Below, in pieces: positions 6,982-61,093 of a stretch of DNA of 64,000 nucleotides (the stretch's first letter is position 1; each line of letters starts with the position of its first letter). The position numbers and the translations under genes were made by a program. The stretch lies in sequence record MZ475892.1; one strand, written 5' to 3'. Below the pieces are notes generated by a model, which ran no database searches, was not told the DNA's origin, and saw only the letters and a program-made list of their open reading frames with translations.

Positions 6982-6990
6982 GAGGAATCT

Positions 6991-7803: not shown

Positions 7804-7807
7804 CAAC

Positions 7808-7836: not shown

Positions 7837-8058
7837 CGATCTATTTGCGTGCCAATCGTAAATAACCTTTCCTCTGCGTTGCCTCTTCTACTCCTGCCTC
7901 GACGCCCACACGCTGCATACTCATTCCATTTGTCTCTACTAACTCTGGCTCTAACTCAAAACTTGCCTCAGTTTCCTGCTAACCTGATCGCTAATTCCTA
8001 TCTGCAAGCCAAGTTCTTGCATACGCAAATTTGCTATTAGGTTAAGAGGAATATTCCC

Positions 8059-39711: not shown

Positions 39712-39758
39712 ATCTGGACAAAATAGAGGTAGCTAGAAAAAGCTGCCCCTGATATACT
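39706..39758 (+). promoter_or_regulatory. Box promoter 8
   Basis: GCATAAATC-TGGACA-AAAT, 32-nt spacer, TGA-TATACT. Confidence 0.8.
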
Positions 39759-39786
39759 AAAAGCGTAGCTTGTGCTGCGCTTTTTT
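39759..39786 (+). terminator. Terminator overlapping the start site of box promoter 8
   Basis: AAAAGCGTAGC-TTGT-GCTGCGCTTTTTT. Confidence 0.65.
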
Positions 39787-39811
39787 ACTTTCTGTCTGAG
39801 GAGACAACAAA

Positions 39812-40898: not shown

Positions 40899-40945
40899 AT
40901 CTGGACAAAATCGTGGTTGTAGCAAAAACCGTCCTATGTTATAAT
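40893..40945 (+). promoter_or_regulatory. Box promoter 9
   Basis: GCATAAATC-TGGACA-AAAT, 32-nt spacer, TGT-TATAAT; TTGTAG at the -35 position. Confidence 0.8.
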
Positions 40946-40951
40946 AGAGAT

Positions 40952-41071
40952 GTAGCGTAGACGTGAGGTATGCGCTATAAATTGAATGACGCGTTTTTGC
41001 TTGACTGTAAGGTAGCGGTATCTTACAGTCCTTTTTCAAGTGGCTTCGAAGTTTGAGGCTTCTTGCGAAAG
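40952..41071 (+). ncRNA. Candidate structured RNA / leader, copy 1
   Basis: GACTGTAAG-N10-CTTACAGTC-CTTTTT, plus a 5' GTGA-loop hairpin and a downstream hairpin. Confidence 0.45.
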
Positions 41072-41154: not shown

Positions 41155-41976
41155 ATGCCAGAAGCACGCAAACCTCGCCCAGCTGATCGTTTCGCTAAAG
41201 CCCGTGCAGAGAAAAACTCACCGGAGCGTCAAGATGCGGCAGCCCAGCGCACGTATAAAGACACTCCGCCTAAATCTGTTCAGGTGAAACTTGATGCTGT
41301 GGCAGCTTCTAAGAAGAAAGTTTCTCGCGGCCCCAAGGCCTCTCGTCCACGTCAGTCGCCTGCTGTTGACGCAGCACCAAAGCCTCGCATTCGTGATGAG
41401 GAACGTGTGTACAATCTCGTACACATGATTCTCTCTGCGTGGAAAGCCGATGCAGAAAACGCGGCAGCAAGTGTGGGAATCATTAAAGTGTCTCGTCGTA
41501 AGATTGAGGGTGCGTTACGCGATCTCAAGAATACGCGCTTCACTAAAATCCCAGGCTTAATCAATGACGTGCTTGTCTACAATGAACTGGTAGCTGAGTT
41601 CGGACAGTGGGTGTACGTCGAGCACGACAGTCCTGATTGGATTTTTGTGCGCCTGCCTGAAAACAGCACGCCTGTGATTCGCGCTGACATTAGCTATGCC
41701 AAGACGGGTGAAACTTCCACGTCTGTTTCGACTTCTAGTGAAGTTCTGCTGAAAGATCTTAGCGAAGACGAAGAAGATGAGATCCCCGAGAATGTCGAGT
41801 ACGACGATGCGGACGAGACTGACGAAGACGAAGAGGAGCCGTATGACTACAGCGCTTGGTCTCTGCGTGACCTGCAGGAGTATGCGAAGCGCTATGACTT
41901 CTTGCAGCCCGACACTGAGGGGTTCGATGATCGCGAGAAGTTGATAGCAGCCATCGAGCTGGGGGAACAGCACTAA
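41155..41976 (+). CDS. Basic-tail / acidic-tract protein with a C-terminal HeH-like module
   Basis: R/K/A/P-rich N-terminus, D/E tract, YSAWSLRDLQEYAK..DREKLIAAI. Confidence 0.8.
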   Translation: MPEARKPRPADRFAKARAEKNSPERQDAAAQRTYKDTPPKSVQVKLDAVAASKKKVSRGPKASRPRQSPAVDAAPKPRIRDEERVYNLVHMILSAWKADAENAAASVGIIKVSRRKIEGALRDLKNTRFTKIPGLINDVLVYNELVAEFGQWVYVEHDSPDWIFVRLPENSTPVIRADISYAKTGETSTSVSTSSEVLLKDLSEDEEDEIPENVEYDDADETDEDEEEPYDYSAWSLRDLQEYAKRYDFLQPDTEGFDDREKLIAAIELGEQH

Positions 41977-42030
41977 GCACAAATATGGACAAAATAGTGG
42001 TAGCATCTAAAGCATGACCTGTGCTACACT
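41977..42030 (+). promoter_or_regulatory. Box promoter 10
   Basis: GCACAAATA-TGGACA-AAAT, 33-nt spacer, TGC-TACACT. Confidence 0.75.
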
Positions 42031-42036
42031 ATAGAT

Positions 42037-42120
42037 CGAATGCCTTGTAGTTTTTTGACTGTGAGTTACTTTCCGGCTCACAGTCCTTTTTAAAGTGCTC
42101 TCCCAAGAACGCTTTAAAAA
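42037..42120 (+). ncRNA. Candidate structured RNA, copy 2
   Basis: GACTGTGAG-N11-CTCACAGTC-CTTTTT, covarying with copy 1, then an 11-bp hairpin; no RBS-led ORF; lies between two promoters. Confidence 0.5.
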
Positions 42121-42149
42121 GCACAGACTGCCTGCGCTTTTGATAGACA

Positions 42150-42202
42150 GCATAAATCTGGACAAAATCATGGTTGTATCAGAATGCTGCCTGTCATACA
42201 CT
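42150..42202 (+). promoter_or_regulatory. Box promoter 11
   Basis: GCATAAATC-TGGACA-AAAT, 32-nt spacer, TACACT; TTGTAT at the -35 position. Confidence 0.75.
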
Positions 42203-42263
42203 TTAATGAGTCGAGCAATAGTGCTCGCAACAAACTAAATCCCAATACTGAGGAGTATTACAC

Positions 42264-43856
42264 ATGGCACGTTTCGAAACTAACACTAACCTGGTTGGCA
42301 AAACTATCGTCCTGCTGAACGGCACCAAAGCGAAGATTGAAGACGCTATCGTTTCTGGCTACAAAGTGAAAGGCCAGACCAAGCGCATCGCAACCCGTGA
42401 CGTTATCAAAGAGGGTGCGCACTTTAAAGAAATCGAGCGCACGCCGCTGAGCCAGCTGGAAGATACTGGTGAAGGTTATGTGAAGTTGAAAGAAGCCAAA
42501 GCTGCTTCTAAGAAAGCGCCTGCGAAAGACGCTAAAGCTACTGGCAAAAAAGCTGCGGCAAAAGACAAGCCTGCTAAGACCAGCAAAAAAGCTGCCGCTA
42601 AAGATAAGCCAGCGAAAGAGCAAGAGCCGAAAGTTCGCCGTAAGTCTGCGAAAGAGCAGGGCAACGATTATCAGGAACTCGCGCAGGCTATCATCAAAGG
42701 CGGTCGCCGTGCAGCGCCAGTTGAAATTGACAGCGTAGACGAAGCGCTGACCGATGCAATCGCTAAGCGTCTGACCGCTGTTGTCGAATCGTCTGAGATT
42801 GCGAAACTCGCCGCTGATAACAAAACGCCGATCGCTAACGCACTGACCGTAACTTACGGTGCTGAGTTTGCGACTGATGCAAACGTTGTGCAGATTACGC
42901 TGAACCTGCAATACGCTAAGCCGACTGCTGTTGAGTCTGCCGCTCCTACTCTGGAGAATGCCGAAGCAATCGCAATGCGTGCTGCTAAAATGGCCGCGCC
43001 GAAAGTGAGCGCTAAACTCAAGAAGGCAGTGCGTGAAGCATTCGATATTGAAACAGACCTTGAGCTGGGTACTGTGATTATGTCAGGCGATGATCAATTC
43101 GCTTACTACGGCGAAAGCGCGAAGCACGCTGGCAAAGCGCTGCTGTATGTTGTCGAAACTGACAAGTTCAAATCTGTCTTGGCCTCTACTCTGACCGACT
43201 ACGAACTGCCTGCTGATGAAGAAGCTGAGGCAGAAGAAGAGGAGGAAGAAGAAGAAGAGGAGGAAGAAGAACCCGCTGATGACTTCGACGACGAAGAGGA
43301 AGAAGATGCGGACGATGCAGATGATGCCGACGATGCTGATGGCGACGACGACGAATTCCAGTACGTTGCTGTAGGCGATGAACACTTTGCTCTGGTCAAC
43401 AAAAAGATCACAGCCAAGTATCACGATGCACTGGCTGAGCAATTCGGCGTTAGCACCGAAGCGCTGGTCCCAGGCTTAGTGTTGACCAACGGCGAGATCA
43501 CTTTCGCTTATCTGGGCAACGATAGCAAAGGCGGCCTGCTCGTTATCGACCTCGACGACGATGCGGACGAAGACGACAACGTTCTGGTCTACCCGAAAGC
43601 CGACGTTAAATCTCTGACCGACTTCTCTCCTGTGCTGGGTGATGCAGATGAAGAAGACGCAGACGATGCAGAAGAGACCGACGAAGAAGACGAAGATCAG
43701 GACGACGACTTCGAATTTGACGATGCGCCGACTGCCGACCTCGAAGATCTGTCCGACGATGAGCTGCGTGACCGCGCTGTTGAGATGGGCCTGACCACTG
43801 TACGCAAAGCTGACAAAATGAACGCCAAGCAACTGCGTGCGCTGCTGTCTGAATAA
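42264..43856 (+). CDS. Polyampholyte multidomain protein (K/A tract, two D/E tracts, repeated beta modules, C-terminal HeH-like module)
   Basis: 530 aa; GAGGAG RBS in a hairpin; low-complexity tracts are directly visible. Confidence 0.88.
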   Translation: MARFETNTNLVGKTIVLLNGTKAKIEDAIVSGYKVKGQTKRIATRDVIKEGAHFKEIERTPLSQLEDTGEGYVKLKEAKAASKKAPAKDAKATGKKAAAKDKPAKTSKKAAAKDKPAKEQEPKVRRKSAKEQGNDYQELAQAIIKGGRRAAPVEIDSVDEALTDAIAKRLTAVVESSEIAKLAADNKTPIANALTVTYGAEFATDANVVQITLNLQYAKPTAVESAAPTLENAEAIAMRAAKMAAPKVSAKLKKAVREAFDIETDLELGTVIMSGDDQFAYYGESAKHAGKALLYVVETDKFKSVLASTLTDYELPADEEAEAEEEEEEEEEEEEEPADDFDDEEEEDADDADDADDADGDDDEFQYVAVGDEHFALVNKKITAKYHDALAEQFGVSTEALVPGLVLTNGEITFAYLGNDSKGGLLVIDLDDDADEDDNVLVYPKADVKSLTDFSPVLGDADEEDADDAEETDEEDEDQDDDFEFDDAPTADLEDLSDDELRDRAVEMGLTTVRKADKMNAKQLRALLSE

Positions 43857-43878
43857 GTAACCTGTAGTTCTGAATACA

Positions 43879-43898
43879 TGCGGCTCGAAAGGGCCGCA
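43879..43898 (+). terminator. GC-rich hairpin without a U-tract
   Basis: TGCGGCTC-GAAA-GGGCCGCA. Confidence 0.5.
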
Positions 43899-43931
43899 CA
43901 CTGACAACAAAGTTGATTGAGGAATCACATT

Positions 43932-45218
43932 ATGTCAAACGCAAACAAAATTCTGCTTAACGCTCGTGTACGCCGCTTAGACGGTACTGTTACTTACATC
44001 AACAAAGTGAATGCTAACGGTTATAGCACCGATGCGAAAGGCCCGCAGATTCCTGTCAAGCGCATTGTGTTTGCAGGCAAGATGCTGAAAGAGATTGAAC
44101 AGCCCTTTGAGAAAGGCGAGCACGTCATTGTGCAGGGCGTTGCAGTGAAGCTGAACAAGCGCCAGCAACGTGAGCTTGCTGATGGCACTCTCGATGAGAA
44201 AGCGCTGCGTCCTGAGTTCGGTAAGCTGGCAGTGATTGACCCTGATACAGGCAAAGCAACTGACGGCAAGAAAGTGAAGCCAACCAAGTCTGATGCTAAA
44301 GCCCCGAAAGCTGGCGCGAAAGCAAGTCTGAAAGCAACGCGTGAGCACAACAAAGAGCCGAAGCGCAGTCGCAAACAGCACAAAGCTGAAACGAACGATC
44401 TCAAAGACAGTCTGGACATTATCGACGAACGCAAATCACCGAAAGCGTCTCTGATTGAACGTCTGGATGCAGCAATCGCCGAAGCGAAAACGAAAGCACG
44501 CCGTAAGCTGTTAGCCGAAACGTTCGACATGGACTGGGCTGATATTAAAAAGCATGGCGGTGCAGGTATCGTTAAGCAGCACGGCCGCAAGAACGCCCAG
44601 AAGTTTATTGATCGTCAGACAGTGCAGGTCGATAGCACAACGTTCATCAAACAAATGCCAGCGCCGCTCAAGCGTCTTATTCAGGACACTGAGTTGCGTC
44701 TCAATCAAAAGCAGATTGAGCAAGTGCTTGGTGCGCTGGGGCTTGATACGCAATTCTACGCAGTCGCCGTGCAGGAGCTGCTGGGCAAACTCAAACTGTC
44801 CATAGGCGGTCGCGTGATCGAAGGCGAAGTTGTTCGAAAGGAGAACACGCCGAAGCCAAAAAGGTTCGTACACGCTGAGGCGCTATATGCAGACAAGAAA
44901 GAAGCGAAACGCCGCGTAAGCAAAATGAAATATGCGCTGCTGATTCCGCCTACGAAAGGTCTGCCTGCGTTACGCATCCATCAGGCAGAGGCAAAGCAGT
45001 CACTCGCCGTTCTGCTGCACCTGAAGCCTGGGAACATCAAGCGTGGTCTGCTTGCGTATGACAACAAAGGCCGTGAGTATATGTATGTCGCTTGCGATAT
45101 GACGGGCCCTGTGTTCATCGATAAAGATAGCAACGAACTGGCGTTCACGTATGCCAATCTGATCGATAACTTCAAACTCAAAGCGCAGCCTGTGTCTGAA
45201 CTGGACGTGGCCGTATGA
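43932..45218 (+). CDS. Basic protein sharing N- and C-terminal modules with the 42264 protein
   Basis: GAGGA RBS in a hairpin; N-terminal L(D/N)GT..I.....GY.......I....I...G...KEIE shared with 42264. Confidence 0.82.
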   Translation: MSNANKILLNARVRRLDGTVTYINKVNANGYSTDAKGPQIPVKRIVFAGKMLKEIEQPFEKGEHVIVQGVAVKLNKRQQRELADGTLDEKALRPEFGKLAVIDPDTGKATDGKKVKPTKSDAKAPKAGAKASLKATREHNKEPKRSRKQHKAETNDLKDSLDIIDERKSPKASLIERLDAAIAEAKTKARRKLLAETFDMDWADIKKHGGAGIVKQHGRKNAQKFIDRQTVQVDSTTFIKQMPAPLKRLIQDTELRLNQKQIEQVLGALGLDTQFYAVAVQELLGKLKLSIGGRVIEGEVVRKENTPKPKRFVHAEALYADKKEAKRRVSKMKYALLIPPTKGLPALRIHQAEAKQSLAVLLHLKPGNIKRGLLAYDNKGREYMYVACDMTGPVFIDKDSNELAFTYANLIDNFKLKAQPVSELDVAV

Positions 45219-45601
45219 GAACTGAAATCATCGTAGCGGGAGTTCTCTCTCAACTTTACACGCGGCTGATTACGGCCGCTATAATGAAAGCGCATGTGTA
45301 TTACTCAGACCTTGCGCCGGTGGTATTCGGTGTGCAGCTTACCAAAGTCGGTAAGTCGCAGTATCAAGCGCTGTGGGATTTAGTAGCGCTGACGATGCAG
45401 ATGGACCACGCACACGGCCGACCGCCTGTTGCTGCTCTGTATGTGTCTCGCGCTAATGCATCAAAACGACCGCCGCAAGCATTCTTCGCTGAATACGAGC
45501 GGCTAACTGGTAAGCGACTCAATGACGACGACTGGGAAGAGTTAGTCGATGAAGTATGGGCAGCTTACTCTCCACCAGAAATCTGTCAGGAGCCGACATG
45601 A
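45215..45601 (+). CDS. Hypothetical protein, possibly winged-helix-like
   Basis: GRPPVAALYVSR...PPQAFF resembles a GRPxLSALVV..PG.GFF domain family. Confidence 0.55.
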   Translation: MRTEIIVAGVLSQLYTRLITAAIMKAHVYYSDLAPVVFGVQLTKVGKSQYQALWDLVALTMQMDHAHGRPPVAALYVSRANASKRPPQAFFAEYERLTGKRLNDDDWEELVDEVWAAYSPPEICQEPT

Positions 45602-46056
45602 AGAAGTTGAAAGCCGTAAAGGTTAAAATTAGCCGCGGTGGTTATAAGCCTTCTTCTAAGGAAGAGGCAAAGAAGCTGGTGGCAGAGTTTCTGCTCGGCA
45701 CCATCGGCATTAGCCCAACGCAAGTCAGTCAACAACTGCTGTTGAATATCACGAACTACAACTATTTGACCTCTGTTGCGTATTCTGGACGTTCTACAGA
45801 TTACAGCCAGGCGGCAGCGCACAAAACTGTAAAAGAACTAAATGAATTTTGTCGAAAGCATAAAATTCAACTGGGCTTGCTAATTATGCCCCACACGTCG
45901 GCGTCTGAATATGATGGTGACGTAATTGTTGCAATCCCGTGGGAGCATGTTAAGAACAATCCGCAAATCCAGTCTGCCGTTAATTCTCTGTTTGAATCGG
46001 TTGAAGCAGACGGCTACCCACAGTATGTGACTGATGCTAAAACAGTAGAGGGATAA
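45598..46056 (+). CDS. Hypothetical protein
   Basis: AGGAG RBS; ATGA overlap. Confidence 0.7.
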   Translation: MKKLKAVKVKISRGGYKPSSKEEAKKLVAEFLLGTIGISPTQVSQQLLLNITNYNYLTSVAYSGRSTDYSQAAAHKTVKELNEFCRKHKIQLGLLIMPHTSASEYDGDVIVAIPWEHVKNNPQIQSAVNSLFESVEADGYPQYVTDAKTVEG

Positions 46057-46057
46057 G

Positions 46058-47338
46058 ATGTTCTACGACTATGTATTCAACTTCGACGAGCGCCAGACGC
46101 TACTGTCGTTAGCGGAATCCAAGTATCTTCTTAAACGGGACATTCCCGAGTATCTTAAAAAGTCCAAACACGCAATTGAGATTCGTCACACTGTGACCAA
46201 TCGTGGACGCGAGCGCCGCTCAGGAACAATAACAACTCCTATCGTGCCGCGTATTCACACCCGTGATGTTATGCGCTTGCTTGATGATATTCGTGACAAC
46301 GCGACTTACAGCTCCTGCCAAAGTCTCGCTGAACTGTTTGAATTGGGCTTGGGCGTTCCGCGCCAGAAAGATATTGCTACTTACCTTCATGCTTATTCGC
46401 GTGAGCACGATAAGAAAGGTATCGGTATCAAGTATATCCGCAAGCTGGTGGTTGATTATCATCGTAAGCACCGTCGTAGTATGGCGGGCAGTCGCTGGTT
46501 AATGCCTGCTGCTTACACGGCCAATCTGCTGAACATGCAGAACTTCATTCATCTGAAAGAAGACGGCTACAAGGGTAAAGTCAAAACGCCAGACGGCATC
46601 CCTGTAGTCTTGATTTACCAGAGCACTGAATACGCGACTGGCGAGTTTACTCTGTGTGACGCATTCATGATTAGTCCGATGGGATATCCAATGCCGTTCG
46701 CACAGATTGCGCTGCGTCCCGAGTTCAAGGCTGTGCCTAAAACGTTTTGCTCCCAAGCTCTGCGTGGCAAAGGCATGTACTCAATGGTTCTCGGTATGAT
46801 TTACTGGGAGAAAGGTGATTCAGTCGAATTGACACGCGAAGTCATGGAGATTGATGACAACCAGTATCTCACGTTGCTCGATGATGAACGTTATGCTGAC
46901 CGCCGCTCTGATGAATATTCAGCGATGCTGGTCAAGCGTGAAGAGTTCCGTCGCAATCGTGACAAGTGGCAGTCAGTGATTGATAAGTACGGCCAGACAG
47001 TTCGAACCCTCAAGCCTGAGATTAGCGCTCGTCTTGATCGTGCTCGTCAGTTCTTCTACGACCGCTCCGAGTTCCTGAAAGAGTTCGAGTCTCAGGAGAA
47101 GCGTGAGAACACCCGCGCATCAAAACGTTTTGCTGTAGCGTCTGCGATGTTTGCTGCGATTGACTGTGGGACAATTGCTGATCGTCAGACCTACCTTGCA
47201 GTGAGCACAAAGATTGATAAAGTGCATGACATTCTCGGTAAGTGGGGATTCAACACTGTAAAATCTGTTAATGCTAGTTTGAAGAAGTCTCTTTTAACCT
47301 ATGACGAATCAGGCGTATCTCGCGTCTGGTCACTATAA
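46058..47338 (+). CDS. Hypothetical protein (426 aa)
   Basis: Long ORF. Confidence 0.8.
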   Translation: MFYDYVFNFDERQTLLSLAESKYLLKRDIPEYLKKSKHAIEIRHTVTNRGRERRSGTITTPIVPRIHTRDVMRLLDDIRDNATYSSCQSLAELFELGLGVPRQKDIATYLHAYSREHDKKGIGIKYIRKLVVDYHRKHRRSMAGSRWLMPAAYTANLLNMQNFIHLKEDGYKGKVKTPDGIPVVLIYQSTEYATGEFTLCDAFMISPMGYPMPFAQIALRPEFKAVPKTFCSQALRGKGMYSMVLGMIYWEKGDSVELTREVMEIDDNQYLTLLDDERYADRRSDEYSAMLVKREEFRRNRDKWQSVIDKYGQTVRTLKPEISARLDRARQFFYDRSEFLKEFESQEKRENTRASKRFAVASAMFAAIDCGTIADRQTYLAVSTKIDKVHDILGKWGFNTVKSVNASLKKSLLTYDESGVSRVWSL

Positions 47339-47359
47339 CCCTTATCTGAGGAGATAAAC

Positions 47360-50300
47360 ATGTCCGAGAACAATCAAAGCGGAGCTACTCGCTTCGGCAC
47401 AGAAGTGCAGGCCGGCATCGCAGAAGCGCAACGCCGTGCTAACTCTGCTGAGAGTGGCAAGCTGAACAAATGCACGATCATCGTGCTGACTTCGATTGAC
47501 GCCAACCAGCGTTACTCTTATCTGTCCGCAGACGAACAACTGCGCGAAGAACTGGTGCGTGGTAAAGTAATCAATCGTCTGCCTGACCTGTTAGAGCGTG
47601 CTGGTGGTAATACCGCTGCTGACAATAACAGCGCGTTCCACATCCTGCACCCAAACAACGGCGTGCCTACCTCGATCGATGCTCGTATCAAAGTGGGCGA
47701 AGGCAATGCGGTCATTCTGTCATATACTGTAAACAAAGCAGTGACAGAGATGCACGGTAGCTTATCGCTTGCTCTGTTTGCATCTGGCGCCGAAGACTTA
47801 AATGATCTGGCCGCTGATTTCGGTATTCACGCAATTGCGATTGTTGAAGAATCGAAAGCCGCTGAGTTCATCAAAGGACTTGAAGCTCAGGTGGAAGCGT
47901 TGAATATTGTAAATCTCACTAGCATTGATGATTCTAACGATTCGTTAGACCTGCCAGTGATTGACTTCGCTGCATTAGCGGGCAATCCTACAACAGTGCT
48001 TACGGGTGCTGTGCGTACCTTCATCATGCAATCAATCAGCGGCGAAGTCTTCGCTGCAATCCCTAATAACGGAGAACTGAACGTGAAAAACGATAACGTG
48101 GCTCAGCCTGCTGACCTGGAAGAAGACTTCGACAACAATGATGAGATTGTTGATCAGAACGGCGGTGAAGGCGAAGTTACTGGCGAAGAGCTGCTGGGCT
48201 ACAAAGCAGAAAATCTTTCGCTCGACCAAATGCGTAGTGCGCTTGAAGCGATCAACTACGACCTGTCTGAAATGACGGAAGAAGCAATCCGTGAAGCGTT
48301 CGAAACTGAACAGAACCTTTACCTGGGTGGCGGCGATGACGAATCTTCCGAAGAAGAGGAAGATGAAGACGCCGCTGATGTTGACAGCGACGAAGAAGAA
48401 GAGGAAGAAGACGAGGAGTTCGATGCTCCTGCGTATCTGGCTCAAGCGCTCGCTGCTGAAAACTTTAGCCGTAGCGATCTGAAACTGCTGGTCAAGTCGC
48501 AAGACCTGAAAGTGATGAAGAACGACACTCCTGAAACTCTGGTGCAGAAGCTGCTGGACCTGGTGCAGGACGCATCGTCTGATGAAGTGTTCGAACTGAT
48601 CACTGTGTTCGTTGAACTGCTGGACGAGCACGGCGTTGAGTGTGACGCGCTGCGTGCTACCATCGCTGAGGACGAAAGCGATGAAGACGAAGAAGAGGAC
48701 GGCGAAGACGAAGACGCCGATGAAGATGGCGACGACGAAGAAGAGGAAGATGAAGAGGAGTCTGATGAAGACGAATCTGAAACCGAATCTGATGACGAAA
48801 CCGAAACTCTGTCTGTGGCTGACGTTACCGATCCTCTCGATTACTTCCGCTTCAACGGTGGTGACCTGACTGCCGAGCAGCGTATTGCTGCTGTCGAATC
48901 GATGGGTACAAGCACTGTTGGTCTGAACATTGTTCAGGTCATGAAAGCGTTCAACGAAATCCGCTCACAGTCTAACCTGATCGATATTGCCGCTGATGAA
49001 GCCGACTCTGCGCTGTACGATATGCTGACTGCGCTGCCGTACTCAACGCTGCTGAGCTTCGCTCAAGAGATTGAGCTGGACATTGATGGCGATGAGTCTG
49101 CCGAAGATCTCGTCACTCTGCTGATGGACGAATCTACTGCCGACAGCGATACGCTGAAAGCGTTGGCGTATGTGTTCGAAACCTACGGCGGCCTGGGTGT
49201 TGAAGCAGATGATATCCTGCTGATGGACTGGCATGAAGCGCTGGCGCTGGTTATTCCTGTGTATGCATCGTCAGACGAAGTTGAGTCCGATGCAGAAGAC
49301 GAAGACGAAGACGTTATCGCTGATGAAGATTCGTCTAACGCTAACCTGAAGTTCCTGAAATCTGTTGACGTCAACAACCCTGTCGGCCCGATGCTCGAAG
49401 TTGATATGGACCGCACTCTGGTTATCAACTACACCTTCACTGACGGTAACACCTACCGCGATGTGCAAGATGAGCTGGCTGATATCGGTGGCGTTAACTA
49501 CCGCTTCCCGTTCAATCTGGGCAAAGCTGGTAAAGCAAACAAGAGCAGCGCACCTGGTAGCCTGATTGCTCCTGCTGAACATCTGATCGCAATGTTAGAC
49601 CGCGCCGGTACTACTCGCTTCTTAGCTGACCCGAACACCTTCGATGTTGGTGTGTGGGCAGAATCTCTGGAGCGTATGCTGAACGCAGAAATCGCTAACA
49701 ACCTGTATGCTGGTCGCATTGAAGACGGCGCTGACCCGCAGCAAGCTGGCATCGTAGTCGGTGACTTCATCGATGAAGACGAGCAAGCAGAAGTTGCTGA
49801 CCTAGGTCTGCTGGATGAAGATGAGCTGGAAGCGTACACTGGTGATCATCTGCCGATTGCAAGCCTGTACAATGCGCAAGCCCGCGTACGTCCAGTCAAC
49901 GTCGATAGCTCTTACGTTGCACTGAGCACCGTAGTGCTGAACGTTGCAGTCCCTGGCTTCTGGTGTGACTCTGATGTTGGTCGTCTGGTGCAAGCGTGTG
50001 TTAATCGCGTAATCAGCCTGGCAGAAAGCGTTGAAGGCATCAAAGTGTATGCAGGCTTCACTCTGGAATCTGCTGCGCTGCTGAACAACGGTCGCCTGTA
50101 CGAAGTTGTTGGTGCGCTGCGTGAGATGGACGGTGTGCAGTCTTACTCTGCCGCTGACGCTGCTAACTTCTCAGAAGCGGAAGATATTATCGAAGTGGCG
50201 TCTTCTATCGATGATCGTGACCTGCCGTTCACTGTACTGGCAAGCGGCCTGTCTGGCGCAACGTTTGAAAACGGCGGTGACCTGACCGTGCTGGTTCCGT

Positions 50301-50365
50301 GCTCTGTCTTCGACGAAGAGGAAGATGAGTCCGAAGAGGACGAGTCAGAAGAAGACGAAGAGTAA
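47360..50365 (+). CDS. 1001-aa highly acidic protein with several HeH-like repeats
   Basis: GAGGAG RBS in a hairpin; several D/E tracts; ENLSLDQMRSAL, ENFSRSDLKLLV, ALPYSTLLSFA modules. Confidence 0.88.
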   Translation: MSENNQSGATRFGTEVQAGIAEAQRRANSAESGKLNKCTIIVLTSIDANQRYSYLSADEQLREELVRGKVINRLPDLLERAGGNTAADNNSAFHILHPNNGVPTSIDARIKVGEGNAVILSYTVNKAVTEMHGSLSLALFASGAEDLNDLAADFGIHAIAIVEESKAAEFIKGLEAQVEALNIVNLTSIDDSNDSLDLPVIDFAALAGNPTTVLTGAVRTFIMQSISGEVFAAIPNNGELNVKNDNVAQPADLEEDFDNNDEIVDQNGGEGEVTGEELLGYKAENLSLDQMRSALEAINYDLSEMTEEAIREAFETEQNLYLGGGDDESSEEEEDEDAADVDSDEEEEEEDEEFDAPAYLAQALAAENFSRSDLKLLVKSQDLKVMKNDTPETLVQKLLDLVQDASSDEVFELITVFVELLDEHGVECDALRATIAEDESDEDEEEDGEDEDADEDGDDEEEEDEEESDEDESETESDDETETLSVADVTDPLDYFRFNGGDLTAEQRIAAVESMGTSTVGLNIVQVMKAFNEIRSQSNLIDIAADEADSALYDMLTALPYSTLLSFAQEIELDIDGDESAEDLVTLLMDESTADSDTLKALAYVFETYGGLGVEADDILLMDWHEALALVIPVYASSDEVESDAEDEDEDVIADEDSSNANLKFLKSVDVNNPVGPMLEVDMDRTLVINYTFTDGNTYRDVQDELADIGGVNYRFPFNLGKAGKANKSSAPGSLIAPAEHLIAMLDRAGTTRFLADPNTFDVGVWAESLERMLNAEIANNLYAGRIEDGADPQQAGIVVGDFIDEDEQAEVADLGLLDEDELEAYTGDHLPIASLYNAQARVRPVNVDSSYVALSTVVLNVAVPGFWCDSDVGRLVQACVNRVISLAESVEGIKVYAGFTLESAALLNNGRLYEVVGALREMDGVQSYSAADAANFSEAEDIIEVASSIDDRDLPFTVLASGLSGATFENGGDLTVLVPCSVFDEEEDESEEDESEEDEE

Positions 50366-50371
50366 TTGACA

Positions 50372-50391
50372 TGCGGTCCTTCGGGGCCGCA
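50372..50391 (+). terminator. C(UUCG)G hairpin without a U-tract
   Basis: TGCGGTCC-TTCG-GGGCCGCA. Confidence 0.55.
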
Positions 50392-50416
50392 ATCTTTCTC
50401 AACAGGAACTGTCTAA

Positions 50417-51238
50417 ATGTCAGAACAAGTTGACCACTCAGCTAACATCATTAAGATGGTTAGTGACCGTGATGCAAAGATTAGCGAGCTGTCCGTTACG
50501 GCAAACGAGCTGCAAGGTCAGGTGAATGACTATGCTGCCGAACTTGCCGCATCTGCTGTTCGTGAGACTGCGTTGCGTTTGAAGCTACGTTCTCAAGAGC
50601 GCCAGACGAATACCGATTTCGTTCGTCTGAAAAATCGCACGAAAGAGCTGGTGGATATTTCAAACACTCAGATGGCCGAAAGCAACGAGCTTAAAGCACG
50701 CGTTGAAGAAATGAACGCTAAGCTGGCGCAAGTTGACCCGATGCCGTTCGTGCTGCATCTGGTTGCTGTGCAAGCTGCATCTGTGTTCTCGTACATGGTG
50801 CAGTCGTTTGCTCATGCTCATGTTAACCAGCGTACCAACGATACCACACGCACACTCAGTGCTCTGATGGTAGGCGAAACAGCGCGGCGTTATCAGTCTT
50901 TCGAAAAGACCATCGCTCGTTACTGCAACTCGATTGGCGCTGAACGTCCGAAAGCAAATGATGTGCGTAACGCTTTCCCTGACTTCATGCGTAATGAAGC
51001 TGATTTATTCTGTAAAGACCCGAAGTACAGTCACGATTGCATGGCCTTAGCTGCTATGCTTAATCTGCCTCGTACATCGTGGATGTATCGAAAGTCTCTG
51101 GATGCCGTAAACCACTTCGCGTGGATTGCAGCTTTCGAAGGCAGTCCTCAAGAGTTTGAGTCAGAATCAGATTACAACGAATTATACGTTAACTCGCTTA
51201 TCGATATTGCAAGCGCGTTAATCGGGCAAAACTTTTAA
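50417..51238 (+). CDS. Protein with an N-terminal coiled coil
   Basis: Heptad-rich first 100 aa. Confidence 0.8.
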   Translation: MSEQVDHSANIIKMVSDRDAKISELSVTANELQGQVNDYAAELAASAVRETALRLKLRSQERQTNTDFVRLKNRTKELVDISNTQMAESNELKARVEEMNAKLAQVDPMPFVLHLVAVQAASVFSYMVQSFAHAHVNQRTNDTTRTLSALMVGETARRYQSFEKTIARYCNSIGAERPKANDVRNAFPDFMRNEADLFCKDPKYSHDCMALAAMLNLPRTSWMYRKSLDAVNHFAWIAAFEGSPQEFESESDYNELYVNSLIDIASALIGQNF

Positions 51239-51271
51239 TCTGTAAAACTTCCCTGTGATTTATTCTGTAAA
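51239..51271 (+). promoter_or_regulatory. Tandem TCTGTAAA motifs
   Basis: Copies at 51239 and 51264 upstream of ORF 51334. Confidence 0.6.
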
Positions 51272-51333
51272 CACTAATTGAAGTTCGCAACGGGCAAAAG
51301 CCCAAATCGAAAAATTAACGGAGTTCCACTACA

Positions 51334-51903
51334 ATGGCAAAAGCTACTAAGTCAACTAACCTGGTTCCTACCCTGGTTTCTCGCATCGCTAAAAAGTCTG
51401 GCTCTATCGGTACTTCGAAAGCAAAAGCAACTGACCTGCCGCATGACATTCTGATCGAATCTCAGCACGTTGTCGAAATCATCGGTTATATCACTGACCG
51501 TTCTGCGAACCACGTTACTCTGCGTCACAAAAAAGGCCACGGTTCTTCTTCTCAGATCGTTTCAACCTTCGGCCCGGGTCAACTGCTGACCGTTCTGGGT
51601 GAAGCTGGTTCACACGGTTCTGTGCGTGCGCTGATTACTGCTCCGGTCTGCGAACTGAAAGGCTTCACCATTAAGTATGACGGCGATACCATCATCGCTA
51701 CTTCTATCGAAACTGGCGAAGTGATTCACGTTAACACCCAGCTGGCCGGTCACACCGTTCGCGCTACTGTGAACGAAACTGCCGCCGCTAAGAAATACGG
51801 CACGCCTGCTCCAGGCAAAGGCAAGAAAGATGCTAAGCCTGCTAAAGCAGACAAAGCAGCGAAAGGCGGTAAGAAAAAGAAAGGTAGCGACGAAGACTTT
51901 TAA
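51334..51903 (+). CDS. Beta-rich protein with a K/A-rich C-terminal tail ending DEDF
   Basis: GGAG RBS; strongly biased codons. Confidence 0.82.
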   Translation: MAKATKSTNLVPTLVSRIAKKSGSIGTSKAKATDLPHDILIESQHVVEIIGYITDRSANHVTLRHKKGHGSSSQIVSTFGPGQLLTVLGEAGSHGSVRALITAPVCELKGFTIKYDGDTIIATSIETGEVIHVNTQLAGHTVRATVNETAAAKKYGTPAPGKGKKDAKPAKADKAAKGGKKKKGSDEDF

Positions 51904-51918
51904 TCGCTGATCTGAAAA

Positions 51919-51984
51919 TCTGTAAAAACTGATTATGCAGAGCAACAAAAATAAAGTTGCTCTGCCGTTAAACGAATCTGTAAA
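51919..51984 (+). promoter_or_regulatory. Tandem TCTGTAAA motifs
   Basis: Copies at 51919 and 51977 upstream of ORF 52033. Confidence 0.6.
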
Positions 51985-52032
51985 CATTAATTGAAGCAAG
52001 TCGCTTCTCATCCCATACAGGAAATAAAAACC

Positions 52033-52833
52033 ATGGCTAAATCTGCTAAAGTAACCGTAACCGTCGCACAGAAAGTTCTGGCTCAGATGCTGGGTGTTGT
52101 TGTAGCGAACGCAAGCGAGAAAGAACTCGTTGCGATTCTGTCTGACCTGGGCCTGACTGTTGCTGCGAAAGGTAAAGGTGCTAAAGCTGAGAAAGCTGCG
52201 AAGGGCGGCAAGAAAGCTAAAGCCGCTACCGTTGCTCAGATCGTTAAGGCCGTTGAAGAAGAGGAAGCTATCTCCCTCGACGGCGTGAGTGAAGATGACC
52301 TGCGTGCAGCGGTCGTCAAAGCTAAGCTGGCTAAGGCCAACAAAGCTAAAGCGCTGGACGAAGAGGAGTTGACTGAACTCCTGACCGACGCAATGGGTGC
52401 CGAGTCTGATGAAGACGAGGAAGAGGACGAAGAAGAAGAGGACGAAGACGAGGACGAAGACGACTCGGACGACGAAGACGAAGATGAAGACGACGAGGAC
52501 TCAGATGATGAAGATGAGGACGAAGACGACGAAGATTCGGACGACGAAGACGAGGACGAAGATGATGAGGAGGAAGACGAAGACGAGGATGAAGATGAGG
52601 ACGAAGATGAAGATCTCGACCTTGACGGCCTCGACGAAGACGAACTCCGCGCCCTCGTGATCGACAACAAGCTGGCCACTAAGGCCAAAGCTAAAAAGAT
52701 GGACGAAGACGAACTTCGTGAACTGTGTGAATCCCACTTCGGCGGCGACGATGAAGACGAAGACGAAGATGAGGACGAAGACGATGAAGACTTCGACGAT
52801 GAAGACGAAGACGAAGACGACGACGACGAATAA
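52033..52833 (+). CDS. Polyampholyte protein: basic N-terminus, two HeH-like modules, about 70-aa D/E tract and a D/E tail
   Basis: AGGA RBS before ATG 52033; the DSDDEDEDEDDE unit repeats three times. Confidence 0.85.
   Translation: MAKSAKVTVTVAQKVLAQMLGVVVANASEKELVAILSDLGLTVAAKGKGAKAEKAAKGGKKAKAATVAQIVKAVEEEEAISLDGVSEDDLRAAVVKAKLAKANKAKALDEEELTELLTDAMGAESDEDEEEDEEEEDEDEDEDDSDDEDEDEDDEDSDDEDEDEDDEDSDDEDEDEDDEEEDEDEDEDEDEDEDLDLDGLDEDELRALVIDNKLATKAKAKKMDEDELRELCESHFGGDDEDEDEDEDEDDEDFDDEDEDEDDDDE
52400..52615 (+). repeat. Coding low-complexity GAY/GAR repeat (D/E tract)
   Basis: Near-pure Asp/Glu codons with a 36-nt period. Confidence 0.9.
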
Positions 52834-52890
52834 GTCCTGATCTGCCGCTGCCCTGCAAGACTAATGAGTGTCTGCGCAGGGCAAGAAATA

Positions 52891-52979
52891 TTCGAAAAAT
52901 AGTTCGAATTATTTCGCAAAAAGTTTGAAAAATTCCTGTCGTTGTTTATTGCACATAGTAATATTCGACTACAGGAATT
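52891..52979. other. AT-rich segment with phased TTCGAA-like repeats and an inverted repeat
   Basis: TTCGAA 52891, TTCGAA 52903, TTCGCA 52913, TTTGAA 52924; AATTCCTGT...ACAGGAATT. Confidence 0.55.
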
Positions 52980-53046
52980 AAACCTGAAAAATTTTACTTT
53001 TATCCAACGCGACGAGTCGCACAAAATAAATTCACGGAGTTATGCC

Positions 53047-53568
53047 ATGACTAAGAAAATCATTTCCGGCCTGAACAAAAACCTGAAAGCTATCGCTAAA
53101 TCAGAAGCTGCCCTGGCCAAAACTGTTGCTGCTACCAACAAAGAGATCGAAAACCTGGGTTCACAGCGTGCTGGTATCGAAGCGCAGATCGCTGAACTGT
53201 CTGGCGTTGCTGCTCCTGACAAAGCTGATAAAAAAGCTAAAGGCGCGAAAGCTGAAAAAGCGGCCAAGCCTGCTAAAGCTGAAAAAGCAGCTAAAGCCGG
53301 TAAGAAAGAAAAAGCTGCTAAAGCTGAAAAGCCAGCCAAAGCTGATAAAAAAGCTAAAGGCGCCAAAGCAGAAAAAGCAGAAAAAGCTACTAAGCCTGCT
53401 AAAGCTGAAAAAGCTGGCAAGAAAGAAAAAGCTGCTACCAAGCCTGCTAAAGCTGATAAAAAAGCTAAAGGCGCCAAGGCGGACAAAGCTGCTAAAGGCG
53501 GTAAAGCTGACAAAGCCGGTAAGAAAAAGAAAGCGCAGTCTGATGACTTCGAATTCGAAATGGAATAA
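53047..53568 (+). CDS. Histone H1/Hc2/AlgP-like K/A-rich protein with an N-terminal coiled coil
   Basis: KADKKAKGAKA(E/D)K three times, KPAKAEKA repeats, acidic end SDDFEFEME; GGAG RBS. Confidence 0.82.
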   Translation: MTKKIISGLNKNLKAIAKSEAALAKTVAATNKEIENLGSQRAGIEAQIAELSGVAAPDKADKKAKGAKAEKAAKPAKAEKAAKAGKKEKAAKAEKPAKADKKAKGAKAEKAEKATKPAKAEKAGKKEKAATKPAKADKKAKGAKADKAAKGGKADKAGKKKKAQSDDFEFEME

Positions 53569-53600
53569 GCAAGCGGTCGCATAGCGCGATAACTTGATCG

Positions 53601-53632
53601 AGAGGGCAGCGCTGACGGGCGTTTGCCCTCTT
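53601..53632 (+). terminator. Long hairpin, probable terminator
   Basis: AGAGGGCAGCGCT-GACG-GGCGTTTGCCCTCT. Confidence 0.6.
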
Positions 53633-53666
53633 GTCGTATCTAACTCATTTTCGAGGCTCTTTAAAA

Positions 53667-54152
53667 ATGTCCAAACAAGAAGTATTCAACCGTCTTGATG
53701 ACCTTCATGCAAAAGAGCGTGAGCGTATCAAACAAGCCAAGCAAGGCCCCTCCTATTTCGAACTGACGAACCTGCGTATTGAAGCAGCCGCTCGTCTCGC
53801 TCGTGCCCTACAAACTCTCAAAGCCGCAAACGTTGTTGGTAACGTTGAAGGTGTCTCTCTGCAGGAAGATGCGCTTGAAGTCGCTCAAGCCTACTGGTCT
53901 GCTATCTTAGAAGGCTTAACCCCTGTAGTAGTTGAAGGCTCGCCTATGCGCAAGCTGCTTGATGGTATGCCTGCATGTATCGAAGCGTTCCGTGTTATCG
54001 TAATGGAAAGCGCTATGCGTGAACATCTAGTCGTTCAATGCAATGCGATTGCAGATGACATTAAGGGTTTCCCTCAACTGACTGGGCATGTTCTGCCTAC
54101 TGTTCAACACACCTGCGAAGAGGGATGCAACTGTGGCTCAATCACTGAGTGA
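53667..54152 (+). CDS. Hypothetical protein
   Basis: GAGG RBS before ATG 53667. Confidence 0.75.
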   Translation: MSKQEVFNRLDDLHAKERERIKQAKQGPSYFELTNLRIEAAARLARALQTLKAANVVGNVEGVSLQEDALEVAQAYWSAILEGLTPVVVEGSPMRKLLDGMPACIEAFRVIVMESAMREHLVVQCNAIADDIKGFPQLTGHVLPTVQHTCEEGCNCGSITE

Positions 54153-54903
54153 GAAGATTAACCGTTACTTCAATCTGATGGAGGACATCCGTGCTGAGAT
54201 GTTCCGCGTGATTGATGTATCTGACCGTTACTTCGGTATCGTTAGTTTCAACACTAACATGCAGGCACTGCAAACCACACTGGTGAGCAAATCCACCCTG
54301 ATGGAAGTTAAGCTGCTTGAAGGTATCACTGGTGCGGAGCTGATTGCGTTTGGCAATATGGTTCACACTGTAGAGCAATGGGTTGCTGGTGGCATGAAAG
54401 GCGCTTTCCCTATCGAGCAGACCAAAGACGTGTATGCCAAATATCGCGCTGCTACCTCAGATGAACCACAGGCACAAAGTGAACCTAAGCCTGCTAATAC
54501 CCCGCAGCCTGATGCTGATGAGTTAGACAGCCAGGAACTGGACAATATCAAAGTTCAACTTCTGTCCTTCGATGACTCTGAACTGATCGACCATGCCGCT
54601 CAGTTTAAACTTGGGACGCGTACACGCCTGCGCAGAATGGGCCGAGATGATTTGTTGGACATGTTGTTTGATCATCATGGTATCTACGCAGAAAACGACC
54701 AGCGCCGCAATGAAAGTGTTGCAGACTGGTTAGAGCGTATACCTCTTGATGATGCTCTACGCGAAGTCGACCGCATAGATGATAGCAGTGTACTCGATCA
54801 CGTTGCGGACGCTATGAGCGTTATGTCGGGTGTCAATGACGCTGTGACGCGAGCGCGTATTAAGCAGGCTCTGAAAGAGCTACACACTAAGCCCGCGCAG
54901 TAA
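54088..54903 (+). CDS. Hypothetical protein with an HeH-like module (start uncertain, possibly 54178)
   Basis: LLSFDDSELIDHAAQFKLGTRTRLRRMGRDDLLDML. Confidence 0.75.
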   Translation: MFCLLFNTPAKRDATVAQSLSEKINRYFNLMEDIRAEMFRVIDVSDRYFGIVSFNTNMQALQTTLVSKSTLMEVKLLEGITGAELIAFGNMVHTVEQWVAGGMKGAFPIEQTKDVYAKYRAATSDEPQAQSEPKPANTPQPDADELDSQELDNIKVQLLSFDDSELIDHAAQFKLGTRTRLRRMGRDDLLDMLFDHHGIYAENDQRRNESVADWLERIPLDDALREVDRIDDSSVLDHVADAMSVMSGVNDAVTRARIKQALKELHTKPAQ

Positions 54904-54917: not shown

Positions 54918-54972
54918 TACACTAAGCTGGACAGATCGTGGGTAGCGTCTGACGCTCTGCCTATGTTATAAT
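54918..54972 (+). promoter_or_regulatory. Box promoter 12
   Basis: TACACTAAGC-TGGACA-GAT, 33-nt spacer, TGT-TATAAT. Confidence 0.75.
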
Positions 54973-59818: not shown

Positions 59819-61093
59819 ATGAAAAATCAGGTACACAACCTCAAAGCTGGTTTGAACGTAGTTGTCACCTCACTGACGGAACTGCGTTCTGGAAAAAACA
59901 TGAAGCGCCAGCATGTTGTTGAAGTATTAGGTCAGCCGTCTACCGTTTTGACTGACCTCACAAAGGCATTGAAAAGTAATACCTTCAAGTCATATCCTGA
60001 TGTACTCCAGTTGCGCGACTCAGTTCGTGCGACAAGCACTACCTGTCTTAACCTGTTAGAGCAAGTGGTATCTCGCCGTATCAAGCCACGCGATCTGATG
60101 GAAAAACTTGGTGAAGTTGTGAAGTCGTTTGAAGCCGACGTTAAGCTGGCTGATTCGACCCTCGGGTATCTGCCTGAATCTCGTAAGACTCTCTCGCTCG
60201 ATGACGTTGAGCGCGATGCTGATGGTAAGCTGAATCTCAAATCCTTGAATGCGGTCAGTGAAAAGATCTATGAGCAAGAGACGAACGATAAGGCGATACG
60301 CAGAGAGCAACGCGAAGACGCAGCGACAGTAAAGACCAGTCGTGTGCTCCAGCGTCTCAAAGATTCGTATGCTCACAAAGTCCCAAGAACGTTCAATAAA
60401 GCCATTCAAATAATCCAATTGCCTGTGATGGCACGATTCGGTACGCTCGCTATGAGTCCTGAGTCGCTGTCTAAGATGGGATTCAAAATTCAAACTGCTG
60501 GTCTGCACTCCACCCCGAGTTCTGACTTAGGTATTGTCTTTGAAAACCAGTTGCTGCTTTTCTTCCGTATGTCTGACGCTAAAGGCGTTGCAGAAGAAGC
60601 TGCAAAGAAACACAAGGACCTCGATGGAACTCTCGTAGAACGCAAACGCCTCCAGAAAGAAAGAAACGCAGAACGCCGCGACATTAAAAAGCTCACTCAG
60701 CTTTTGGCGGAAAACAAGTCACTCGTAGCCAAGCGCAAAATCCGTGAGCAGATTGCGGAAGCACAGGGCAACGTTGACGACATTACTGCGACTCTTGACG
60801 ACATGGACCAAAAGGTGCGCTCATCGAACTCCAAAGAGCGTGTGTATCGCCAGATGAAAACATCAAGCGATCATGCGATGCTGGATTACCTTAACCCTAT
60901 CGTCGATATGCTCAACGAGAAAAGCAGTTCAACTCTCGGTCTGTTTACTACCATGCCGTTACGCGGTGTCATGAAAGACGCTGACGTGCATTGCGCATGG
61001 CTCATGGAACAATCAGCTATTCGACTTCTGTTGCGCCACTGTGGCGGTGACGTGAAGTTGCAGAACTGGTTCTTGCCGTGGACTAATGGCTAA
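59819..61093 (+). CDS. Hypothetical protein with coiled-coil segments
   Basis: 424 aa; heptad-rich region around LQKERNAERRDIKKL. Confidence 0.8.
   Translation: MKNQVHNLKAGLNVVVTSLTELRSGKNMKRQHVVEVLGQPSTVLTDLTKALKSNTFKSYPDVLQLRDSVRATSTTCLNLLEQVVSRRIKPRDLMEKLGEVVKSFEADVKLADSTLGYLPESRKTLSLDDVERDADGKLNLKSLNAVSEKIYEQETNDKAIRREQREDAATVKTSRVLQRLKDSYAHKVPRTFNKAIQIIQLPVMARFGTLAMSPESLSKMGFKIQTAGLHSTPSSDLGIVFENQLLLFFRMSDAKGVAEEAAKKHKDLDGTLVERKRLQKERNAERRDIKKLTQLLAENKSLVAKRKIREQIAEAQGNVDDITATLDDMDQKVRSSNSKERVYRQMKTSSDHAMLDYLNPIVDMLNEKSSSTLGLFTTMPLRGVMKDADVHCAWLMEQSAIRLLLRHCGGDVKLQNWFLPWTNG

Follow-up and report, generated by a model that had tools for sequence, protein, structure and literature searches.

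Why would a bacteriophage place, directly ahead of its topoisomerase genes, a series of proteins with very large and opposite charges? The question is raised by a gene cluster in the last 64 kb of MZ475892.1, the genome of the Erwinia jumbo phage pEa_SNUABM_34 (264,306 bp); this whole 64 kb stretch was analysed and is called the window here. The cluster, at positions 41155–54903, matches this genome at 100% identity by megablast and consists of 13 genes, all on the + strand and directly 5′ of topoisomerase II, which are numbered from gene 0 (starts 41155) to gene 12 (starts 54133), the proteins being numbered likewise. The MZ475892.1 annotation gives every gene as a hypothetical protein. An earlier note on this DNA listed the open reading frames, placed them upstream of a topoisomerase operon and read them as a phage chromatin or condensate system. 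All of the listed frames are present on the + strand where the note placed them, with the properties it described, and the topoisomerase II genes follow at 55044 and 57803. The answer favoured here, at a probability of about 0.4, is an intracellular role in which proteins 10 and 8 coat or compact replicating phage DNA, and protein 9 together with the Asp/Glu (D/E) linkers of proteins 1 and 6 serves as polyanionic partner or chaperone.

The cluster stands apart by its charge (Table 1). The 79 annotated proteins in the remainder of the window reach an absolute net charge of 29 at most, and the net charge per residue of protein 9 lies 5.5 standard deviations (sd) off the mean of these 79. For none of the 13 cluster proteins is there a match to a family in Pfam, NCBIfam or among solved structures, and their PHROG matches are all to unnamed phage families. 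Weak matches to SMC, Lebercilin and sigma-factor families were rejected as coiled-coil or compositional, and no match was accepted from PDB sequence searches with protein 5, protein 8, a protein 5 profile and a helix-loop-helix profile.

Genes 8, 9 and 10 form the core of the cluster. The AlphaFold model of protein 8 shows a confident beta core at amino acid (aa) positions 37–146 (predicted local distance difference test, pLDDT, about 90), a disordered basic N-terminus and disordered Lys-rich arms (pLDDT < 50). Weak matches suggesting a tandem SH3/Agenet-like fold (E = 0.03, template-modelling score < 0.3) were not accepted. Protein 8 is found in 29 clusters of large protein databases, and every one with a named source is from a phage of the Lu11/PaBG/Y3/Alexandra group. 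In roughly half of the orthologs the chain closes with SDE[DN]F or similar (51886–51900 here), the remainder having a plain Lys-rich tail. Protein 9 displays a helical N-terminal part with a Lys/Ala (K/A) tract, a 96-residue stretch with at least 80% D/E, and two helix-loop-helix motifs. Protein 10 begins with a conserved, helical and coiled-coil-like head of about 54 aa, which is probably dimeric. This is followed by 109 residues (positions 55–163) of K/A/E/P/G repeats consisting of 39% K, 35% A, 12% P+G and 13% D+E, in which P or G recurs at a mean spacing of 8.4 residues. The chain ends in an acidic-aromatic D-F-[DE]-F peptide (53539–53565) that is conserved in 27 of the 27 phages and loci inspected; it reads DDFEFEME here, DDFEDFDDLD in PaBG and KDFDDFE in Lu11. 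This tip resembles a docking peptide.

The charge pattern is kept in every relative examined and the block in several of them, which bears on the earlier note's suggestion to check conservation across the phage family. Genes 1 to 12 are syntenic, directly upstream of topoisomerase II, in this phage, Y3, Yoloswag, Dickeya JA11 and Yersinia fHe-Yen9-02. The synteny is also kept in a metagenomic relative (L012); a second and more divergent metagenomic contig (L011) is readable in part only. In the five syntenic phages identities drop to 24–76% while net charges barely shift: they range from +11 to +16 for protein 8, from −89 to −100 for protein 9 and from +26 to +30 for protein 10, and in the large acidic proteins 1 and 6 from −56 to −70 and from −174 to −201, respectively. 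The phage group comprises the "hairy" jumbo myoviruses Alexandra, Y3, Yoloswag and the Dickeya AD1/JA phages, with PaBG and Lu11 more distant (PMC7412058, PMC6143709).

The trio is found in these distant relatives as well. A weak tblastn match of protein 8 pointed to the Pseudomonas phages PaBG and Lu11, whose homologs give profile E-values of 2e-20 and 5e-13. Next after the protein 8 homolog stands a protein of 150 aa (PaBG) or 159 aa (Lu11) with 67% D/E and a net charge of −93 or −99, and the third gene encodes a coiled-coil plus K/A/P-repeat protein of 202 or 177 aa with a net charge of +31 or +25. Across the seven phages of Erwinia, Dickeya, Yersinia and Pseudomonas, the mean net charges are +14.1 (sd 1.9) for protein 8, −95.3 (sd 4.2) for protein 9 and +27.6 (sd 2.1) for protein 10, and the length of protein 9 falls from about 265 to 150 aa at near-constant charge. 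A scan of IMG/VR with the protein 8 profile gives 20 loci, and the order protein 8, poly-D/E protein, K/A-repeat protein is kept in 20/20. Because it is conserved in every relative examined, the charge pattern is not due to chance. Neighbours of the trio in PaBG and Lu11 are topoisomerase II, a 5′–3′ exonuclease or pol I, a sigma factor, SSB and a UvsX/RecA recombinase. The homologous cluster of Lu11 also contains gp158 (370 aa, isoelectric point (pI) 4.05, net charge −68; positions 6736–7848 of the locus, L014), annotated as a putative polyphosphate kinase, a label that may be compositional.

The conservation bears directly on the possibility that the tracts are functionless slippage products. 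The D/E and K/A tracts are coded by imperfect short repeats, and tract lengths show small differences in close strains, where aligned spans differ by 12–54 nucleotides (nt), both as neutral expansion would have it. However, the repeat units match just 62–89% in all but one array, so the tracts are not fresh products of slippage and no recent expansion is evident. Net charges stay within about ±5 across very large evolutionary distances, and the acidic-aromatic tip of protein 10 is invariably kept. Neutral expansion is thus extremely improbable, the conservation data already speaking against it.

The earlier note had also described dedicated promoter motifs and biased codons, and both are borne out. 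The promoter motifs fall into two classes. Motif A consists of TGGACARAA, then a TTGTAGC-like element, 17 nt and a TATAAT-like element, and looks like a sigma-70 promoter of host type that carries an upstream element. Motif A is found 5′ of gene 0, of gene 1 (two copies), of the topoisomerase II large-subunit gene and of a gene at 59819. At three sigma-70-like promoters (39715–39790, 40902–41037 and 41986–42090) a strong hairpin with a U-run lies within about 5–90 nt on the 3′ side, an arrangement that suggests promoter-proximal terminators or very short transcripts 5′ of the genes at 39812, 41155 and 42264. Sequence is shared between two of these hairpins, at 41003 and 42057. The terminator-like hairpin after gene 6 suggests that genes 1 to 6 are one transcription unit behind sigma-70-like promoters.

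Motif B is TCTGTAAA, usually followed by TA; the window has 10 copies of it on the + strand and none on the − strand. Two copies precede gene 8 in 5/5 and gene 9 in 4/5 of the syntenic phages. On the + strand it is also seen at 2819, 13434, 23899, 28101 and 59468, 5′ of uncharacterised genes. A scan of about 228 of the 261 kb of Y3 yields 30 motif B sites, all co-oriented with genes and about 22 of them situated a few tens of nt 5′ of a gene start. Annotated Y3 genes behind motif B are those for DNA polymerase A, SSB, primase, a recombination endonuclease, Dam methylase and asparagine synthase. The Y3 capsid, sheath and other structural genes are without motif B and carry a TAATTT-type element about 30–60 nt 5′ of the start codon, which may serve this phage group as late promoter. 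The Lu11 record labels CTGTAAATA-type sites, the same motif as B, as "putative middle/late promoter"; two of these are 5′ of the poly-D/E gene and one is 5′ of SSB.

GCT, AAA, GAA and GAC are codons of highly expressed enterobacterial genes, and the codon usage of genes 8 to 10 is shifted to these four, which points to high expression of the trio. Gene 10 uses GCT at 67%, AAA at 80% and GAA at 94%, versus 31%, 49% and 56% elsewhere in the window; in gene 8, GAA reaches 100% and GAC 78%.

Gene context, shared promoter, codon usage and conserved opposite charges together argue for an intracellular, DNA-linked polycation/polyanion system. Neither a virion component nor random low complexity accounts for the data as well as does an abundant, replication-phase polyelectrolyte system inside the cell. 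From them we infer DNA binding, a partnership of acidic with basic proteins, and any role in organising DNA or any higher-order body. In the proposed mechanism the module would be lineage-wide and non-virion in the Lu11/PaBG/Y3/Alexandra jumbo phages, providing abundant, oppositely charged and largely disordered proteins in the replication phase. Protein 8 would contribute a novel small beta-domain with basic disordered arms (about +14), protein 9 a short helical head with about 100 D/E residues (about −95), and protein 10 a coiled-coil head, a Lys/Ala/Pro/Gly tail (about +28) and the conserved end peptide. Proteins 10 and 8 would bind nucleic acids non-specifically by their Lys-rich arms and so coat or compact replicating phage DNA, and protein 9 with the D/E linkers of proteins 1 and 6 would be polyanionic partners that compete with DNA for the polycations. 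Such competition would keep the polycations soluble and exchangeable, in the manner of acidic histone chaperones. The folded domains of proteins 1, 2, 5 and 6 may make specific contacts.

The reading in the earlier note is partly borne out, by the location outside the virion-gene block, the replication-gene promoter, the high-expression codons and the lineage-wide opposite charges; tethering by HeH domains and membership in the H1 family are not supported. The condensate part of that reading, as developed here, is decidedly unlikely: the polyanions (proteins 9, 1 and 6) and the polycations (proteins 10, 8 and 2) would gather with replicating DNA in a shell-less body held together by charge, which would concentrate replication and topology enzymes and exclude host nucleases, and the D-F-[DE]-F tip of protein 10 would dock client enzymes. 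What such a complex presupposes is seen, namely conserved opposite charges, predicted disorder, adjacent genes and a common promoter class.

Several points weigh against a DNA-coating role. A DNA-binding domain is recognised in none of the cluster proteins by Pfam or NCBIfam. The models of proteins 6 and 8 show no significant PDB neighbour, and the assignment of function therefore rests on composition and context. A profile of eight helix-loop-helix motifs of about 35 aa retrieves neither a Rho nor a SAP nor a LEM protein from the PDB. Summed over the cluster, net charge comes out strongly negative, so that no simple pairing of charges can be read from it unless expression levels are known. 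A search of the literature gave no expression, localisation or proteomic data for any member of the group, and no virion proteome, transcriptome or imaging for the Erwinia, Dickeya and Yersinia members. Two further points concern the virion. The TAATTG element TAATTGAAG, which follows motif B at genes 8 and 9, resembles the structural-gene motif, and expression of these two genes may therefore continue late. The survey of PaBG virions by gel and matrix-assisted laser desorption/ionisation is of low sensitivity, and Lys- and D/E-rich proteins are poor in tryptic peptides, so that packaging in the virion has to be reckoned with.

Alternatively, the proteins could be internal to the virion, the Lys-rich ones packaged as DNA-condensing proteins and the acidic ones acting in the prohead core, as scaffold or as ejected proteins, as in T4. 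Jumbo-phage heads carry many extra proteins, and T4 pairs basic internal proteins (IPI–III) with acidic core proteins (gp22, gp67 and gp68), a set that, apparently like the present one, is made in large amounts. The codon bias implies high expression, the TAATTG element is in keeping with structural genes, and gel-based proteomics easily misses charged low-complexity proteins. However, the T4 prohead-core genes form part of a head-gene module with late promoters, whereas the present cluster lies among replication genes and carries the promoter motif of polymerase, SSB and primase genes. The cluster is outside the head/tail block, which in Y3 is on the opposite strand at about 45–160 kb with the protease, capsid and sheath genes, and motif B is common to replication genes and absent 5′ of capsid and sheath genes. 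Thus, by the Y3 map and the motif scan, the cluster falls neither in a head module nor behind a structural promoter, the TAATTG element leaving some doubt. Genes 1 to 6 are behind sigma-70-like promoters, and a protein with a net charge of −185 inside a DNA-filled head would be electrostatically unfavourable. The 14 gel bands of the PaBG virion proteome, the one such proteome found for the group, include no cluster gene number (PMC7412058), which argues weakly against packaging. A virion-internal function is on balance unlikely.

A DNA-coating role inside the cell also has to be set against an action on the host, in which the poly-D/E proteins would mimic DNA and soak up host nucleoid proteins and restriction or defence nucleases, and the Lys-rich proteins would have the host nucleoid, not phage DNA, as their target. 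Acidic DNA mimics, e.g. T7 Ocr, T4 Arn and SPO1 Gp46, are an established phage strategy, and like the cluster proteins these are strongly acidic phage proteins whose resemblance to DNA is electrostatic. The host-type sigma-70-like promoters ahead of genes 1 to 6 suggest early expression, as would suit decoys, and the phage group is not among the chimallin-encoding phages. But the known mimics are small, folded proteins with patterned charge directed against host proteins. The cluster displays homopolymer-like D/E tracts of 40–100 residues and a multidomain protein of up to 1001 aa, always beside phage polycations. No DNA-mimic or anti-restriction family (Ocr, ArdA etc.) is matched in Pfam, NCBIfam or PHROGs, and a Foldseek search of the PDB with protein 6 shows nothing below E = 0.08. 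Further, the strict adjacency of genes 9 and 10 and their constant charge from Pseudomonas to Erwinia hosts argue for a partnership internal to the phage and not for host-specific targets, and the promoter 5′ of genes 8 and 9 is of the replication class. A decoy function is accordingly doubtful.

The third function considered concerns RNA and translation: transcripts or ribosomes would be the targets of the Lys/Ala-rich tails, and phage gene expression, not DNA, would be what the module organises. Lys-rich disordered tails bind RNA as readily as DNA, and in PaBG and Lu11 a phage sigma factor gene is situated a few genes downstream. Some cluster members elsewhere are annotated as a tRNA synthetase or a ribosome-assembly factor; these labels are compositional and the members mislabelled. 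An RNA-binding domain is found in no cluster protein by Pfam or NCBIfam, and the neighbouring genes are mostly for DNA enzymes. This function is very unlikely.

The comparison with linker histones, which the earlier note made for protein 10 in calling it H1-like, stands in part. The Lys/Ala/Pro-rich composition of the C-terminal tail is found, but the globular winged-helix domain of linker histones is missing, as is any family match: hmmscan against Pfam (E up to 1) gives neither Linker_histone nor any other family, and NCBIfam (E up to 0.1) gives none. The H1 tail with prothymosin-alpha or other acidic chaperones resembles the present set in that a Lys/Ala/Pro-rich disordered polycation stands beside a D/E-rich disordered polyanion whose charge is comparable or larger, and in the proposed logic of a polycation on DNA with a polyanion as competitor or chaperone. 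In contrast to H1, protein 10 has a coiled-coil head, 13% acidic residues within its repeats and an acidic-aromatic end; the cluster proteins are phage-encoded and unrelated in sequence, and their interaction is here only proposed. AlgP, the chlamydial Hc1/Hc2 and the C-terminal tail of PhaF are bacterial "H1-like" nucleoid proteins with Lys/Ala/Pro repeats. They share repetitive K/A/P tails with protein 10, and PhaF in addition has a helical oligomerising head before the tail; no Pfam (E up to 1) or NCBIfam (E up to 0.1) model of these families is matched by protein 10. To our knowledge none of them is paired with an adjacent poly-D/E gene. A nucleoid protein of the T4 DsbA/GapR type is reported for subgroup 2.2 jumbo phages (PMC7824862). 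It is a small coiled-coil protein, DNA-binding and linked to topology, and like protein 10 occurs in jumbo phages of the same broad subgroup; however, no cluster protein has a Pfam match to it, and it lacks the long K/A tail of protein 10.

The HeH-tethered scaffolds of the earlier note are not upheld, since no Pfam model of HeH type (SAP, HeH, Rho_N, Ish1 or LEM) reaches threshold. The sole match is Ish1 in protein 0 (E = 0.009, 16.8 bits versus a cut-off of 26.6), and proteins 1, 6, 9 and 12 match none of the five models. The best PDB matches of the helix-loop-helix profile are EF-hand light chains at E of about 0.1. At these motifs the AlphaFold model of protein 6 shows a helix, a loop of about 9 residues and a helix, a shape that is compatible with HeH and not diagnostic. 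Protein 7, described as another coiled-coil protein, is present as an open reading frame, but its N-terminus matches coiled-coil families weakly only.

Upstream of the trio, the largest product is protein 6. Its AlphaFold model displays a confident N-terminal alpha/beta domain (35–235), three helical modules (272–324, 353–441 and 483–640) and a C-terminal alpha/beta domain (660–983), with D/E linkers between domains (pLDDT < 50). A tblastn search places homologs in 57 phage records, each of them from a phage of Erwinia, Dickeya or Yersinia. Among 5.8 billion proteins it falls in 42 clusters, every one with a named source being from an Erwinia or Dickeya phage, and six of the remaining ones are on contigs of 219–268 kb. 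A search of BFVD returns the JA29 ortholog, a 356-aa PaBG protein (E = 4e-5) and one other entry, and no more; a PaBG homolog is not reached by tblastn with the C-terminal domain. The PaBG gene product immediately upstream of the protein 8 homolog has the same size, 356 aa, as this structural match, and from its size and place a protein 6 without the long acidic linkers may exist in PaBG/Lu11.

Protein 1 carries a K/A tract at residues 78–105, D/E tracts and a C-terminal helix-loop-helix. Protein 2 is its partial paralog, with an hhalign probability of 93.9% over the N-terminal approximately 175 aa; other hhalign links among the acidic proteins were judged compositional. Protein 5 has few relatives: a profile search finds only 23 representatives among 1.84 billion representative proteins, and it falls in 19 clusters of large protein databases, those with a named source all coming from phages of this group. 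Its distant relatives show no Pfam domain with the exception of a Sel1/caspase protein, and this match spans about 50 residues and is probably spurious. In the clade, the N-terminal approximately 185 aa of protein 0 are conserved and the acidic C-terminal part is variable or split; protein 0 was thus rejected as a member of the conserved core, its conservation being confined to the N-terminal half.

Table 1. Genes, promoters and terminator-like elements of the cluster and its borders (positions in the window).
Feature	Position	Strand	Net charge	Description
Motif A promoter of gene 0	40902–40945	+		TGGACAAAA ... TTGTAGC, 17 nt, TATAAT
Hairpin and T-run	41003–41037	+		3′ of gene 0 motif A promoter
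Gene 0	41155–41976	+	−14	273 aa; N-terminus basic; C-terminus acidic, helix-loop-helix at end
Two tandem motif A promoters of gene 1	41986 and 42159 (region 41986–42202)	+		
Hairpin and T-run	42057–42090	+		between both gene 1 motif A promoters
Gene 1	42264–43856	+	−63	530 aa; N-terminal domain of about 175 aa shared with protein 2
Gene 2	43932–45218	+	+29	428 aa; orthologs +22 to +31
Gene 3	45215–45601	+	−3	128 aa; small, near-neutral, conserved; no family match
Gene 4	45598–46056	+	+3	152 aa; small, near-neutral, conserved; no family match
Gene 5	46058–47338	+	+14	426 aa; no low-complexity sequence; no Pfam or PDB match
Gene 6	47360–50365	+	−185	1001 aa; pI 4.05; acidic tail
Intrinsic-terminator-like hairpin	50372–50391	+		8 pairs, 6 G-C; T-rich tail
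Gene 7	50417–51238	+	−6	273 aa; N-terminal region coiled-coil-like; poorly conserved (11–24% identity)
Two motif B copies 5′ of gene 8	51239 and 51264 (51239–51283)	+		second runs on as CACTAATTGAAG
Gene 8	51334–51903	+	+11	189 aa; Lys/Ala/Pro/Gly tail ending SDEDF
Two motif B copies 5′ of gene 9	51919 and 51977 (51919–51996)	+		second runs on as CATTAATTGAAG
Gene 9	52033–52833	+	−99	266 aa; 47% D/E; acidic tail
Gene 10	53047–53568	+	+26	173 aa; strongest codon bias in cluster
Gene 11	53667–54152	+	−6	161 aa; no family match
Gene 12	54133–54903	+	−15	256 aa; one helix-loop-helix motif; no family match
Motif A promoter	54928–54972	+		5′ of topoisomerase II large-subunit gene
Topoisomerase II large-subunit gene	55044–57068	+		neighbour 3′ of cluster
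Second topoisomerase II gene	57803–59464			neighbour

Elsewhere in the window, a radical-SAM protein (E = 3e-11, 20526–21665) and a UvdE-type UV endonuclease (E = 1e-46, 25807–26787) are found among small hypothetical genes 5′ of the cluster. A 406-aa protein at 28983–30203 shows a weak, sub-threshold NOA36 match over residues 197–302 (19.1 bits, cut-off 32.6), and a small protein 3′ of the topoisomerase genes (61086–61622) a weak HNH endonuclease match (E = 0.002). The window contains no tRNA gene and no Rfam family.

In the literature searched, neither these proteins nor any histone-like or condensate system for this phage group is described. A 2026 review of jumbo-phage biology uses neither term, histone-like or condensate, and a 2021 comparative survey reports for the subgroup only the DsbA/GapR-type nucleoid protein. 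A polycationic DNA coater with a polyanionic partner is so far known from eukaryotic chromatin, and would here be built from unrelated phage proteins.

Of the means that jumbo phages have to organise and protect DNA, only the chimallin "phage nucleus" is understood. The present phage group lies outside the Chimalliviridae, for which Alexandra was used as an outside comparison (PMC10299810). As the earlier note had found for chimallin and PhuZ, no tubulin and no chimallin-like or shell family is seen among the window proteins scanned. The chimallin nucleus and the proposed system are alike as jumbo-phage means to organise or protect replicating DNA, but the former is a folded, self-assembling shell. 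The module is thus a concrete, lineage-wide candidate for DNA organisation in jumbo phages without chimallin: it extends from Pseudomonas to Erwinia phages, is co-regulated with replication genes and apparently abundant, and charge, not sequence, appears to be under selection. If the acidic and basic partners cooperate on DNA, the linker-histone/acidic-chaperone logic would for the first time have a counterpart in a phage, and charge-driven disordered complexes a tractable bacterial-virus model. If a co-condensate were formed, it would be a non-chimallin answer to the problem solved by the phage nucleus. Even if the function differs, the proteins being packaged or acting as decoys, the near-constant charges and the end peptide would be a clean case of selection on bulk physical properties.

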